Positions 32,701 to 41,115 of a stretch of DNA of 64,000 nt are shown in pieces. Position 1 is the stretch's first letter, and the number at the start of each line of letters is the position of its first letter. The notes below the pieces were generated by a model. The model made no database searches and was not told the DNA's origin. It saw nothing but the letters and a program-made list of their open reading frames with translations. The translations under genes were made by a program, and so were the position numbers. This DNA is from Dimorphilus gyrociliatus (taxonomy: Eukaryota > Animalia > Annelida). The stretch is taken from positions 1,108,916-1,172,915 of the forward strand of contig CAJFCJ010000020.1 in NCBI GenBank assembly GCA_904063045.1. The letters are read 5' to 3'.

Positions 32701-35700
32701 GTATTCGTTTCTTCGAGTAAGTGCACTATACAAACTACCATCGTGTTCTCCTAGAAACTTGCCAATTAAATGTTTTTCACCATAGGCGAAAACAATATAT
32801 CCGTGACTGTCTACCAAATAACATTCAGTTTCATTTTTCTATAGAAAATAGTAAATGGAAATGGAGTTAATAAGTTTCGACTTTCTCTTTTTAATTAAAT
32901 AAAGAATTCTTCTTTTTAATATAGCTGACCTCGCAATAAGAACACTCTTGACAATCAGAATCGTTATATAATAGATCATAGAAATTTTCTAATTTCATTT
33001 GGAAACCAACAGCTGCTGTAATGCTTCCTTGGTCACTGGAATCATTTATCATAATAGCTTGAACGCCCGTAAGAACAGAAGAATAGATTTTTTCCTTATT
33101 ATTCTCTTCTTTCTTTTTATAAGGTACTGATAGCACCCATTTATTTGGGTGTTCGACTGCTCTCTTAAAATAATCCTCTTCAAAAGTTCCTTTGGCATCG
33201 CTCAAAGAGCTTTAAAAGGATTTTAGCAAATATTTTATAAAAAAATATAAGAAGTAATTAATTATTGTACCGATCTCTTAGGGTTTCATTTCCTAATACT
33301 ATTTCTTTTATTAAGCCAGATCTAGTTGCCAGGAAAATGTATTGGAAGCCTAGTCTGTTTCGGTAGAAAAAAGGGGGTAAATATATAATTAAACGTAGAA
33401 AACAGAGAAAAGCATACGATTCTGCTTCTTTAGCGTTTGTTGATTCGGCTCGATTTTCTTTTCTCCATTTGTCAGGAAAATCTTTTGTAATATTTGCGTC
33501 GTATCTTAACTTTCCTATTAGCTCAACGTCACATCTTGCTTTAAATTTCTCTTTCTCGCTTTTCTTAGCACCTTTTCTAGCGTATTTCATATATTTTATT
33601 AAATTAGAAATCGTTTTATTCTCATTCCTGTCGAATCTGCAGTACATCCAATCTGCTAAACGGGTACCTCTTTCCCTAAGATTCATTTCATCCTTGTCTG
33701 TTATTGGAAAAGTTTCTGGATCCATGGTAGCATTAAAACTATATTTTCCTAAATTCTTAGGAAATACAATAGCTAAACTAAACGGAGTGTCCTCAATAGG
33801 AGCAAAATAGTAGTCTTGCTCCCTAACAGCGATGCGTTTCTGTGATAAAATTATTTTTGTATAAATATGCGAAAGATGCTACTTCTGTAACGAATTTTAA
33901 TTACCATGTCATCAAAGTGAACTGTTACATTCATACTCTCCATTCCTTCTGTTCGATTTATCATCTTTCTCCTTAATTCCATATTGTAATTTGGTATTGC
34001 TAAGCTCTTTTCGTAAGCCATCCTTTCACTCTGCACAACTTCTAATTCTACTTCTGCTATATCAACGCTATTATAATTTGGTTTTATAATGTCCTGTCCA
34101 TTCTTTTTTGAGGTTGGCCTGAAATCCGGATGGAATAGCACGTAGCCATTATTTGTAATAGCAAAAGCATAACCATTAGGGCCCAGTTTATGGATAGGCG
34201 TTAGTCTGGTGAATTCGCTTAAGGGAACATCGGTTCCCATAACACCAAGAAGAATACCCTCTAATGCTGTTCGGTTTCTCTTGTCAAACACTGGTTTTGC
34301 GACGCTTGTCATTAAGTTTATACCCTATTTTAAAACGTATATGAACAATAAATATTTATGAGGGAGGGGATGCTCAATTACTGAATGGGGACCAACCTTT
34401 TCGGTGAAATGCTAAAGCGGTAAGGGAATAAAAAAAAAAGTATTATTTTTTCTCTGCCACCAATTAATCAACATAATTAACTTCATTTCAGAAAAAAACA
34501 TCACATTAAATCAAAAGAATAAAGATAAAGGTTGTTAAAGAAATATTAGAGAAGCAAAACGAAAAATACAACAGGCAATCATCCGTTTTCCTCTACTTTT
34601 TACACTTTTCTTTCTTGTCTTTCCCAATTTTCACCTACTAATTCTAATGAATCACCTCTAGTTCACTTCCGGCTGATAAATATACTTCAGTCCAAATAAC
34701 AATATTTGGTTGCTTTATCACCATCGGTCTGCTAGTTACTCGAACGTACATCTAGAAGAGGAAATGCTTTATGTGTTTTTCACCTTTCCTAATTCATACA
34801 TGATGATGGATTTAAAATAAGTACTGTATATTTTTTTCTATACGACACTACTACCGCAAAATGCTAGTGCAAATTGACAAAGCCATCCTAATTAGTTGGG
34901 CGGCTAAACCCTGAAAGTATAATAAAGGGTCACTTGTAACTGAGAAAAATTGTTAGAAATCCACCAATTAAATATTGAACAATCACTTTTCTTTATAGCT
35001 TTTAATAAATAGATAGACAGGTCGATTATTCTTTTATCCTACTAAATAGGAATTATCATTATAATCCTTTGATGAATGGGTACTTTTCATATAGTCAAAA
35101 TAACATGGTATGTTGCTTTATATCCACATGTCTCTTTTACTATTTCTTTAGCTAGTTTTTAATGAAAAGCTTTATGATACGATTGAAATGAATACATCTT
35201 CTATCTATCTATCTATCTGTCTATCTCTCTCTCTCTTTGTTTTCGCTAGATTATAACATTTCCCATGTTCATTTACCTAGACTTTTCTGTTGTATCTATT
35301 CTTTGCAGAACGGAATTATAGTTCCAATTAGAAGACACAACGTATAACGAAATATAGAAGAAAAACATTAGAAAATATAGAAATTGTTTTAAAGATAAAG
35401 AGTGTATAATATAAAATTGAAAAAAATAACAGAAATAAAAGGATTTGCTTTCGTGACGGTAAAAAGAAAAGGTAAAATGTGAAAGAAGAATTGAAAATTG
35501 TATTTTTTTTTTCTTCTTGTGCATGTTACAAAGAGAAGAAGAAGAAGAAGAAGAAAAAAAAATATATACATATATACAGTATATATATAAGAGATTGTGC
35601 TTTCTTATAAGAACAACAAACGTGTATGATTTGCAAGAAATATAGAAGTAAAGGGGATAAAAGTTGAAAAAAAGACATCGATTTTTGCATGCATAATATA

Positions 35701-38700
35701 TACCGCTTCATCGTTATAGACATTTGTCCAGATTGTATGATTCATACGTTTGATTACCATCGGTCTGCTTAGGACGTGCACGTAATCCTGGGATTTGTCA
35801 ATTGTCAATTAAAATACTACTATCGTTTACTATTGAACATTTTGTTAAACATGTCTACTCAATTAAAATATTACAGAAATTTTATGAAAATGATATAGAA
35901 ATATGAAAATGAAGAAGAAGAAAAGGAAAATTGAAAGGGGGATGGAGAAAGAAGAAGAATGAGAAGCAAAGATGGAAGTTGATGATAAAGTAAGAATAAA
36001 GAAGATTTTGTAAAAGACAGAGAGGAAAAGATAATATTTCTTTCATGATTATCGGTTTAAAATGATATAGTCATATAAATAATATAAAATACATCCTATA
36101 TTTTATAATAGGCTAGCAAATGCATAATGTTTGTTTTTCCGTAAGTCTTGATCGTCAATAAGTTATAAATAAGCTGTTGGCTATTTATCTAGGGCAATGA
36201 GAAAAAATGATGTTAAAGGCACCAACCTGAACGTGTTCTTGAACGTCCGCCAAAGTTGAAATATGGGAAAAGTATCCCTTATTAGCGCATGCCATCCACT
36301 TTGCGTGTTTCGAATCACCAACTTCTCTTCCTATTAAGTACGTAAATATCCGGACCTGCCAATATCGATTAATAAATCATTTGATTCTTTCATTAATACT
36401 ACTCAAGAAAATAAATGGAAAATAACGCTTTTGGTGTATTTATACGGCTTTGTCTTCATTTATTTCTAATTTTTTATATCATTACACATTTACCATTAAA
36501 ATATTTATAAGTCTATAAAACTTGTAAGTTTGCGTCGTTCGACGATCAATAGTACTATTTTTTATATTAGGGTAAATTGAAGAGACATTGACGGCTATTT
36601 GATAAATTACTAAGGGCTTTTTACATAGAGCCCCGAGCTGTGAAGGGAAAAAGGAAGGAAATTTTCGGCATTGAAATGGGAAAAAAAATGAAAAAAAAAA
36701 AACTTTAAAAGAAAAAAGAGAAATCGATTGAAAACTCGAAAAAATTGACTTAGTAATTTTAGTGTCACCCAAATGGATATTTTCTCCATCATCCAAAGTC
36801 CATTAAGAATGCCAATATGCTAGTTTAATCCCTATGGACTCTTCAATAAATTTAATGTTTCACCCCTTTCTCCTTGTGGACGAGTGGGCAGGGAAATTAG
36901 ATATTTAAAAGAAACAATTCTCTACACCATCCTCATCAATCGACTGTAAACATCCGAGTTTTTTTCTTTTCGTGTTCGCTCTACCAATGCATTAATTTTC
37001 ACTTGAAAGTAATAAAAACTCTCTTTTTTTTAAATATATATATATATAGAGCGTTTTTTTTATAATAAATTCATTTACGACGGATAGATATACTCTCTAC
37101 TATATCATGACATGTTAATCAGCTTTAAAATTTCACAACTTTTCTCCCCTATTAATTATTCTTAATAAAAGTATATTATCCCATGAATATTTTTATCTTT
37201 TAATCCAATTCCTTTCCCCTTCGTTTTTCCCTTTTCATCCTAGATGATTACTTTAATAAGATGGTTTTTAACTTATTAAACTTCAGAGTATTTAAGCTCA
37301 ACATCCTATAGTTATTCTTACATACTGTATAATTACGTTTATGAAAGAAAATTAATCAACTTACGTTAGCTTTTGGGGCCCAATTATACTTATCAAAAAC
37401 ATCTTCGTATGACTCTGGAGCACCGTCTGTTATTATCATAATCGCCTTATTGCAGTTTGTGGTTCTTTCCGTTTGATTTGCCTATTAGGAAAATTATATC
37501 GTTAATTCCCAGTGCTGTAAATATTTTTATCAGCATCTTTCCCCTGCGTAAAATCCTGAATTAACGATTCTTAATTCTAATCACTTTTTTTTCATTAAAA
37601 AAATCAGCTTTCAACTTAAAATCTATTTAGATTAGGTTTGCCCAGGCGTCTAAATCGCCTTAAAAAGGATTATAGGGGTAGGTTTTTGTTCGATTTATAG
37701 AACGCGATGTGTGTTAATATTGAGATATTAAGAAAGGGAGAAGGAAAAACAGAGGGAGATTAGAGAGAGAGAGAGAGAGAAAGAGAAAGGAGAAAGAAAA
37801 CTTGGAAAAAGTGAGATCAATGATCAATTTCAATAAGGAATTGTCCATTCGAGAGTTACAATATCTTCTTTAGTCTAATCAACTTATTGAATTTAGATAA
37901 GTAAAAAAGAAAAAGATTGAAAGGGAGGCTGTCGTCTTTTCAAAAGAAAATACAATATAAAAAAAACTATATAGTACATGTACAGTATATACCTATATTG
38001 AAAGAAATATATATATATATAGAGAGAGAGAAAGAAGAAGAAAGAGAAAAAAAGAGGGATTGGTCTATATTATTTGTTGCTCAAATTTGAATTTTCGATC
38101 GTTAAAGATCGATTTGGGATGAAAAAATATATACCCTTATAACATTACGCATCAATAAGTTCTATACAGCTGCTTAAAATCAAATAAAAACTCTAAAAAT
38201 CGATCCAATAACACTTACATTAGACAATAAAGAAAACGCTTCAATCAGAGCATCTTCAAATCTAGCGATATTCTGAGTTGTTATATCTTTTACTGAGTCT
38301 TTTAATTTCTTTTTATTATCTGCATTTGCTTGGATAAGTGTTCCGTTGAAGCACTCGTCCACATACTCTGGTCTTTCAGCAAACTTAAGAACATTGAAGA
38401 AGTCATTATCGCTCAGTGTGTCTAAGATTTTTTCTACTGTTGCCTTGGCTATTGCCATTCTTAATCCCGTCATGCTGCCGCTTGAGTCTACTAGGATTAC
38501 AACATCCTTAGGCGATGTGGCGGCTTGTATATACCTAGAAAAGGAAACACGATTTTAGACATTATAAACTATGATGGTAAAAAAAACACGATCTAAACAG
38601 CCGGGTGATTACTGAAATCGTAAAGTATCGTTCAGCGTAAATGACAGAGATTTACATATCGGAAAAGAAGACAATCTCCTACATTGATTGAGTAAATTAC

Positions 38701-39961
38701 AGAAACATAGAATTATATCCTATGAAAACTGTCATTTTAAAAGTTTCTTATCCTTTTTTATGAAACTACTTTGTTTTAAATTCTCTTTTTTTTCCCCGGA
38801 GCAACTTTGAACTCATCTGTACCAGGAGACGTAAGAAATTGACAAAACCTAAGTTCGCCTGTCGATAAAATCCCTCAAGGGTTTTTTTCGCTGTTCGTTT
38901 TGTCTTAATCGCCCTAAAACTGCAGCAATAATCTGTTACTGGAAAAAAATGACAGTAAAGACAGCAATTTCCTAGTCTAACCAAAAAAAATTTCTTTATT
39001 ATATAGAGTGCAGAGTAAATAATTGCTTCCTTTGAAGTACGTTGAACGAAACGTTTTCGTAATCTTTTATAATCACCCATAAAGCAACGTTTACTACATA
39101 TATCAGTCTATAGAAAAACATCAACAATAGCATGCACATATACATACATACATTCTCAAACACTCCTAATAGTTTGTCATGCGAAAATCAAGAACTAGCA
39201 AAAAATAGGATTGCAATTAACAAAAAATAAATTAAACGACAACGATGTCTATAGTCTTTGGGATAAGATGCTATAAAAACAAAGTAGGTGTATGCATGGA
39301 AATAGGGTATTGTGTTGGAAGAAACACACTACAGACGATAATGATGCATTATAGAAGAGAGAAGTACAATTTTTAAATCAATTATTTTAGTTTTGGGGAG
39401 GGGAAAAAGGGAGAAAGAAATGAAATTAGAGAGATATTACTTTTAAATTCTATTTTCTTTATATATTTATAAAGATATAAAGAATACTATCCTCCCAGAT
39501 TATAAAGGAAGATCTTACATATATATCAGCTATTGTACTATCGCCTTCTTTTATATCCTATCTAAACATTTCAGCTTTTTGGATTACTATTCTATTTTTT
39601 TCCTTTAAGAATTTTAAGTCTTTTTCTCTTCATTCTTTTTTTTCATTTATTAGTGAAAAAACCGAGTTTTTTCTCTTTAATGTATAAAATTATACATCAA
39701 AGGATTATAATAGAAAGGTTTAATATTAAAAGAACACGAATGAGTTTTTATCTCTCAAATTTCCCTTGACAGAATAACGAACAGACAACAAAGTGAAATA
39801 TCATATTCTCCCCTTACCATCCTCTATGTCTACAATCGAAGACGTCTACCCGTTTATTTTCGTAAAGGGTCCATCTAGTCCCTGTGTTTTTGTTTACAGA
39901 AACATGACAAGGTGCGAAAACAACAAACCGAAGACCAACCAAAAAGAATTTTTAATACATT

Positions 39962-40017
<56 letters not shown>

Positions 40018-40339
40018 AATGAGTCGATAAAAGCCCACAGATTATGAATTATATATGTATATATGGCATATGTGTCTTAGTCCCTGCGTAATTTTTATAT
40101 ACAGTATAAACTGTATCTCGGCTATACTATGAATAGCATTTACTTTCGTCAAATGGATATGTCATGTTCCGGTCTATCTCTTGGAAAGTTTTTTGAAAAC
40201 GGAAAGAATATATATATATATATATATATATATACTGTATATTGTATATACCTGGTTCTGAGATGCTATCAAAATTCATTTCCTAATTGTGTTATAATCA
40301 TCTTAAAAAGGATTTTTTTTCTGTATAGAATATATATAA

Positions 40340-40394
<55 letters not shown>

Positions 40395-41115
40395 AGTATG
40401 TATATATACCTTTTATATACATATATAACGGATATTGTTTTAACAATATAGTATACACCGGTTTGTGATAAATATATAAAAATATTGCGTATATTTCCGT
40501 ATATACTATATGTATTCGAAAACTATGGAAGGTTAAGTGCCCGTCACCTTTCTATCGATCAATTAGACAACATTCGCGCTAACATTCGATTTTTATTGTT
40601 TGTGTTTTTTCGTGGCTTTGTTTACTAAAACTCACCATCCGCGAGTTCTGCAATCGAATAGGTCTACTCCGTTGTCTGGTAATTGCCATCGCATTCCTAC
40701 GATGCGTATATATATATATATATATACTGTATATATATACTTATGCATAAATTTAGGTTAAGAGTGGGACATATGATATGATTTTGTTCTGCTTTTTTTG
40801 TTATTATTAACGCGTAATTAAAGTATCGACTAACCTTATTCAGATCGAAAAAGCTAAGGAAATAGTAAGACTTCAAAAGTGAGATTTATTCGAACGAATG
40901 GGTAAAAAAAAATACTTAAAACTTTTGATCTTTAAAATGTTGATATTATATACTGTCTATAAATTTATATTATTTCTTTATCGTTTTCTTTATTCTCATT
41001 TTTTTCTAATCTTTTCCTCTCTTTCACTCTCTGTCTCTCTATCTATATTCAAAATAGATTTTTTTCTATCTCTTGTGAGAGCTTACTCTTTCTATCTCTC
41101 TCTCTCTCTCTCACT

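Follow-up and report, generated by a model that had tools for sequence, protein, structure and literature searches.

The stretch of DNA analysed here comprises 64,000 nucleotides (nt) of contig CAJFCJ010000020.1 of the annelid Dimorphilus gyrociliatus (assembly GCA_904063045.1; positions 1,108,916 to 1,172,915 of the forward strand) and is referred to below as the window. On its minus strand lies an alpha2delta-3-like gene in which the small exon for each half of the amino acid-binding pocket is present in two tandem copies. The question raised by this locus is whether these copies are alternatives in splicing and, if so, whether the resulting proteins differ at the ligand site. The exon pairs are very probably alternative exons, and we consider it on balance probable that both pocket-half exons of this gene were duplicated in tandem and are alternatively spliced into several versions of the pocket, with the second pair altering the ligand site. 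All coordinates are positions within the window, and those of exons are given in the 5' to 3' direction of the minus strand.

The two exon pairs flank the VWA domain. Pair 1, located upstream of it, consists of exons 1A (40696-40636, 61 nt) and 1B (39881-39818, 64 nt), both in phase 1, and pair 2, located downstream, consists of exons 2A (35787-35704, 84 nt) and 2B (34751-34656, 96 nt), both in phase 0. Pair 2 is followed by a 15-nt microexon encoding HFTEK (34411-34397). All exons described in this work have AG/GT borders, and the members of each pair share the same phase. To search for duplications, 421 stop-free peptide segments from the minus strand between 28.5 and 47 kb were compared each against every other, and pairs 1 and 2 were the sole internal duplications beyond low-complexity sequence (E = 2.9e-6 and 8.4e-8). 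The four exons were found where the original prediction had placed them, with the microexon just inside its lower bound of 34382, and its claim that the only duplicated exons are two tandem pairs flanking the VWA domain was borne out by this comparison together with the splice borders. The eight possible combinations (1A or 1B, 2A or 2B, with or without the microexon) all keep an open reading frame (ORF). Inclusion of both copies of pair 1, or of neither, shifts the frame and introduces at least four stop codons, and thus pair 1 can be used only one copy at a time; inclusion of both or neither copy of pair 2 maintains the frame. The intron between 1A and 1B contains long (TA)n tracts at 39955-40020 and 40330-40415, which are mutually complementary and break the assemblies of relatives. 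When the introns were scanned for inverted repeats, (TA)n sequence dominated the output, and no docking or selector pattern can be claimed from these scans.

The gene itself extends on the minus strand from approximately 42258 down to 29788 within a window that is AT-rich (~30% G+C). The tblastn comparison of this multi-exon region gave collinear matches to full-length alpha2delta-3-like orthologues from Lingula, Asterias, and others. The large exon downstream of the microexon (34324-33905, 420 nt, with the 3' end placed by homology) matched 13 distinct alpha2delta-1 chain sequences in PDB (best E = 1.5e-13, all at or below 1.8e-12), and Pfam matches were obtained from single exons for VWA_N (E = 2.8e-10), VWA (E = 1e-7), and dCache_1 (E = 3.4e-8). 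The order VWA_N, VWA with the MIDAS motif DSSGS, and dCache_1 is that of alpha2delta proteins. The closest annotated proteins, which are 55-62% identical over the studied region, belong to Lingula, Gordionus, Branchiostoma, and Ptychodera. Based on the PDB and Pfam matches and the collinear tblastn matches, all of them sequence comparisons, the gene product is assigned as an alpha2delta-3-like auxiliary subunit of voltage-gated calcium channels, in agreement with the alpha2delta identity originally proposed.

Transcript evidence for exon use was sought in metatranscriptome contigs from four runs over positions 34697-40696. In run X4, contig 13 joins the third VWA exon V3 (36355-36227, 129 nt, also supported by its borders) to exon 2A, and the overhanging end of this contig reads the microexon and then the start of the large exon. 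In that message, 2A and the microexon are therefore spliced in and 2B is skipped, which makes 2B at least an alternative exon. Of the combinatorial 2x2 (or, with the microexon, 2x2x2) use originally proposed, 2A together with the microexon is the only part observed in spliced RNA. Run X1 contains the junction between the first two VWA exons, V1 (38534-38219, 316 nt), which carries the MIDAS motif and gives the Pfam VWA match, and V2 (37481-37365, 117 nt), which is otherwise defined by its borders and frame. Runs X1 and X2 both include intron sequence, and X2 contains a 5.9-kb unspliced sister-species contig at a depth of 36; because this intronic content reflects either DNA or unspliced RNA, these two runs cannot serve alone as evidence of expression. 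When the 100 N-terminal residues encoded by the large exon, or the VWA exon, served as the query in protein searches, genomic frames only and no spliced RNA-derived fragments were retrieved.

The encoded residues were placed on the known ligand site of alpha2delta-1. The contacts reported for L-Leu and gabapentin in the rabbit protein are W207, V209, Y219, W225, Y238, R243, W245, Y452, D454, A455, L456, T463, and D493, with the ligand carboxylate held by Y238, R243, and W245 and the amino group by D493 (10.1101/2022.12.05.519047; 10.1101/2022.10.03.510667). The vertebrate alpha2delta-3/4 proteins differ from alpha2delta-1 by V209Y, Y238F, A455S, and L456Q (10.1101/2022.12.05.519047), and at position 217 a Phe prevents bulky ligands from binding (PMC9901441). 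Searches of PDB with exon 2A or 2B alone as the query returned no match, and the numbering was therefore taken through the Lingula protein aligned to human alpha2delta-1 chain 8hlp_F, in which human numbers equal the rabbit numbers minus two. The human positions given in the original prediction (R241/W243, Y450/D452, and D491) fit this alignment, which also agrees with its proposal that pair 1 encodes the N-terminal half and pair 2 the C-terminal half of the amino acid site of the first dCache domain.

The part of the pocket preceding pair 1 is supplied by a constitutive upstream exon, Eup (41730-41599, 132 nt; defined by borders, frame, and orthologue alignment), which provides W207, Y209 (Val in alpha2delta-1), F217 (Ala there), and N219 (Tyr there). 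Exon 1A encodes W225, the inter-strand loop, F238, R243, and the first two bases of the W245 codon. The two copies of pair 1 are the same at all four contact positions, W225, F238, R243, and W245, and differ in the inter-strand loop (QLPDNG in 1A and TLYENKR in 1B, one residue longer), at position 237 (Leu vs. Val), and at position 242 (Thr vs. His). The second residue of the R-x-R triplet faces away from the pocket (PMC9901441), and the Thr/His difference lies exactly at this middle position. The expectation that pair 1 yields pockets of different specificity was thus not upheld, since the published contacts are unchanged between the copies.

Pair 2 behaves differently with respect to the same alignment to human alpha2delta-1, which had been proposed as a check and which places those of pair 2 among the contacts and those of pair 1 in the loop and at positions 237 and 242. 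Exon 2A (..WTNVYNDEA) encodes Y-N-D-E-A and 2B encodes Y-L-S-A-G at the corresponding site, so that Y452 is shared and Asp454 is replaced by Ser, Glu455 by Ala, and Ala456 by Gly, at three of the 13 published contact positions; the loss in 2B of the Asp that follows the pocket Tyr was correctly anticipated. In vertebrates, gabapentin-binding and non-binding paralogues are told apart by five sites, two of which are positions 455 and 456. The tail of 2B is longer and extends the loop toward position 463 by four residues. The microexon is inserted between positions 456 and 463, and the large exon provides S/T463 and the constitutive Asp of GVMGTDV (codon 34231-34229), the equivalent of D493, as the original prediction had stated. 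From these residue differences, pair 2 plausibly alters the ligand site.

The obtained residue assignments also define the type of pocket. With respect to the AA_motif of amino acid sensors (Y..R.W / Y..D), exons 1A and 1B each carry the N-terminal Arg and Trp as the R243 and W245 equivalents and each have Phe in place of the first Tyr of this half (DLF/DVF), like vertebrate alpha2delta-3/4, and the C-terminal half has Y452 in both 2A and 2B and the constitutive Asp equivalent to D493. A gabapentinoid-type pocket has small residues at 209 and 217 and Tyr at 238, and the residues found here, Y209, F217, and F238, are those of the insensitive type. The name gabapentinoid-binding pocket given to the site in the original prediction was therefore overstated, as these residues make vertebrate alpha2delta-3/4 insensitive to gabapentin; because they clash with bulky ligands, amino acid pocket is the proper name. 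The pocket is predicted to be of the alpha2delta-3/4 type and to accept small amino acids, rather than gabapentinoids, as ligands.

Selection on the duplicated exons was assessed in relatives. Sister-species contigs L001-L003 (93% protein identity) align over 35077-30557 and end at TA repeats short of pair 1 and exon 2A. Exon 2B differs from L001 at 5 of 96 nt, and all five differences are synonymous and none non-synonymous (synonymous divergence, pS, 0.24; non-synonymous divergence, pN, 0). As 22% of the sites in this exon are synonymous, five of five differences would be synonymous by chance with a probability of approximately 5e-4. The introns beside 2B are diverged and gapped relative to the sister species, and the constitutive exons have pN/pS values of 0.05-0.08. 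In addition, contig L006, which has ~57% protein identity and for which this gene is a closer match than all annotated ones, carries the corresponding exons in unchanged order, namely an 84-nt A-type exon (..WTSVYIDAA), a 105-nt B-type exon (MYV..WTPVYISADTTNIKDV), and a 12-nt microexon encoding HGRK, with AG/GT borders throughout; its B-type exon starts with MYV and ends with ..VYISADTTNIKDV. The retention of the A/B pair in L006 indicates that the B copy acquired its Asp/Ser difference and its longer tail long ago and has maintained them. By these sequence comparisons, the pair 2 copies are assigned to purifying selection. For pair 1, the evidence of constraint comes from the comparison between 1A and 1B, in which the codon of the key Arg is CGC in 1A but AGA in 1B, two bases apart with Arg kept, and the inter-copy pN/pS is 0.3-0.4. 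Relatives of 1B were found neither by a search of a protein collection with the ORF around 1B nor by a degenerate DNA pattern in Joint Genome Institute (JGI) metagenomes.

Two further features of the pair 2 region were noted in these alignments. At 0.24, the pS of 2B amounts to roughly half of the values obtained for the constitutive exons (0.44-0.56); lowered synonymous divergence is frequent in alternative exons that bear splicing signals. Within the intron between 2A and 2B, a non-coding block at 35075-34960 is ~88% identical to the sister species, the remaining intron being unalignable, and this block may be a splice-choice element.

The same exons were examined in other phyla; a search of orthologous loci for the same duplications was among the checks named in the original prediction. 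Pair 1 was recovered in Lingula and Ptychodera, and pair 2 was absent from the six fetched loci (Lingula, Owenia, Gordionus, Ptychodera, Branchiostoma, and Physella) and present in L006. In Lingula anatina, the NCBI isoforms XP_013401127 and XP_013401126 differ exactly at the pair 1 exon (MKWQYRGIDMFDCRTRG in one), and the two exons lie in tandem at L007:52139-52193 (55 nt) and L007:54809-54869 (61 nt), both being used in annotated isoforms (P0009 and P0175). In Ptychodera flava, the tandem exons at L010:2499-2559 (61 nt) and L010:2943-3006 (64 nt) have the same lengths and order as in the window. The first Ptychodera copy (..DLYDCRNQG) has Gln in place of the key ligand-binding Arg; of the isoforms XP_070573321 and XP_070573320, X2 (P0172) carries the Gln copy and X1 (P0164) the Arg copy. 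In Owenia, Gordionus, Branchiostoma, and Physella, neither of the two exons is duplicated. The 61-nt copies of this gene and Ptychodera have NG-x-DL in common and the 64-nt copies have E-x-K in common, and the pair 1 copies within each species share species-specific residues. Judged from ~20 residues, the pair 1 copies across phyla may derive from one old duplication or from repeated ones. The finding that the duplication recurs in both a brachiopod and a hemichordate suggests that variety has been selected for at this site.

Additional variation around the pocket was observed among the alpha2delta proteins retrieved. R-x-Q-x-W, with Gln for the key Arg, occurs in the single-model proteins P0031, P0062, P0092, P0103, and P0117, including those of Tubulanus, Nucella, and Argonauta; these proteins may be paralogues or may represent the second copy of an exon pair that is not annotated. 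Lingula has a second, weaker duplicated cassette after the exon of the pocket Tyr, at L007:61644-61733 and L007:62392-62448 (EPWLKLRSQVTDGWVRRPL vs. EPRVYCRHKLTNGWVHRPL), of which the first copy alone occurs in the annotated isoforms seen. The microexon and its splice sites are kept in the sister species (HFSVK) and in L006, and Lingula has HLEK at the same site. Optional inserts of 3 to 20 residues are located right after position 456 in Branchiostoma, Ptychodera, Lingula, Gordionus, and an alpha2delta-4-like gene of a shark (proteins P0006/P0152-P0158, P0007/P0160-P0172, P0177, P0151, and P0184). The presence of such inserts in protostomes and deuterostomes indicates that the microexon is part of an old splice hotspot.

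Splicing that affects the Cache domains of alpha2delta is known from vertebrate alpha2delta-1, where it concerns regions A, B, and C and where the affinity for gabapentin is reduced in one variant (PMC9901441). In that protein the variable regions are cassettes or arise from an alternative acceptor and form loops off the contacts, whereas in the present gene homologous exons that carry contacts are substituted for each other. The alpha2delta-3-like isoforms of Lingula and Ptychodera resemble this gene more closely, as their pair 1 exons are in tandem, share the same phase, and have unequal lengths that leave one usable at a time; in contrast to them, the gene of D. gyrociliatus also has pair 2 and retains the key Arg in both copies, where one Ptychodera copy has Gln. 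The pocket shares its fold and motif with bacterial dCache_1 sensors such as PctA (PMC8915833), in which the ligand is held at its carboxylate by Arg and Trp and at its amino group by Tyr and Asp, although here the first motif Tyr is Phe and the domain is split by VWA, with both halves variable by splicing. A choice of one of two tandem exons that remodels a functional site is also known for FGFR2 IIIb/IIIc, CaV1.2 exons 8/8a, and Drosophila cacophony (PMC11828482, PMC4165533). Unlike these cases, the present gene encodes an auxiliary subunit and has two separate pairs, one for each half of a single pocket. Literature searches on alpha2delta splicing, tandem or mutually exclusive exons, straightjacket, and CACNA2D3 yielded no description of alternative pocket exons in the papers searched. 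The novelty claimed for the arrangement thus holds for those papers, and it does not extend to the databases, where NCBI already annotates pair 1-type isoforms for Lingula anatina and Ptychodera flava; no paper describing these isoforms was found, and they are known as database annotations.

Taken together, the obtained data can be explained by a gene that encodes the strands of the amino acid pocket in two small exons, located on either side of the VWA domain and each present as a tandem duplicate. Pair 1 is restricted by its frame to one copy at a time, and splicing most likely yields as many as four variants of the pocket module; optional use of the 15-nt microexon would raise this number to eight. 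Replacement of 2A by 2B is predicted to reshape the pocket on the side of the ligand's amino group. Replacement of 1A by 1B would keep the contacts and change the hairpin loop and two second-shell residues, with the effect of either a finer adjustment of the pocket or a change of the outer surface; for pair 1, fine-tuning of the site or a change of a surface such as the contact of Cache1 with alpha1 appears the more likely outcome. We infer that exons 1A, 1B, and 2B all occur in mature RNA, that the two pairs are combined freely, and that ligand binding is changed. Several observations weigh against this explanation. As judged from the alignment, pair 1 alters no published contact residue, and Asp454 is also missing from several single-copy alpha2delta genes, for example that of Gordionus, so that its loss need not alter specificity. 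The reading frame does not enforce exclusion between 2A and 2B, and 2B without 2A was not seen in the RNA contigs. Contig 12 of run X4 starts inside 2B (34733-34697) and leaves the covered stretch, and it may be unspliced, whereas no contig on 1A or 1B was present in the four RNA runs. The absence of pair 2 from the six fetched loci points in the same direction.

Some of these observations would also be expected if the exons are alternative but serve to tune the protein surface, either where Cache1 faces the extracellular loops of pore domain (PD) III of alpha1 or at another partner, with the pocket differences being incidental. Such a role is possible but rather doubtful. It would account for the restriction of pair 1 variation to a loop and to residues off the contact list, it is consistent with the extensive contacts of Cache1 with the PD III loops of CaV1.2 (10.1101/2022.10.03.510667), and the variable inserts after position 456 in many phyla suggest a tolerant surface loop. 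However, pair 2 speaks against a purely surface role, as it alters the listed contacts 454-456, two of them gabapentin-discriminating sites, and so does the alternative pair 1 exon of Ptychodera, in which the ligand-binding Arg is swapped for Gln.

It is unlikely that 1B, or with still less likelihood 2B, is an unused relic of duplication, so that only one copy of that pair ever reaches mature mRNA. The lack of RNA on 1A and 1B, the ambiguous RNA on 2B, and the failure to find 1B in any relative searched would agree with a relic, and by our own estimate an open frame of 21 codons persists by chance in ~17% of cases at this base composition. Nevertheless, 1B has retained its AG/GT borders, its phase, and all conserved pocket residues, including an Arg whose codon has changed at two bases, and two other phyla have the same arrangement as annotated isoforms; for 2B, the exclusively synonymous changes and the B-type copy kept in L006 argue against loss of use. 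Very improbable, in our assessment, is a 2B that acts as a cassette included together with 2A, or as a regulatory exon that yields a non-functional protein and lowers the levels of active subunit. Joint inclusion of 2A and 2B does stay in frame, but the two exons encode the same two beta strands, which would then be duplicated, and 2B is strictly conserved in protein sequence, which points to a folded and used product. An alternative use of both pairs, with pair 2 acting at the ligand site, remains the explanation that we favour.

A wider interpretation, which we put forward tentatively, is that splicing toggles the amino acid sensor of alpha2delta-3-like subunits in several marine invertebrate phyla and provides regulated, cell type-specific ligand sensing, with the replacement of Arg by Gln in Ptychodera and of Asp454 by Ser together with the longer loop in D. 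gyrociliatus as examples. If this is true, the genome studied here would add a further switch, placed on the opposite pocket half, and would thereby enable combinations. To our knowledge, the alpha2delta pocket binds drugs and leucine, and no natural on/off or specificity switch of it is known. Natural isoforms of one gene that differ only in the pocket-forming strands would be ready-made tools to determine whether the occupancy of this conserved pocket by ligands matters and for which ligands it does.

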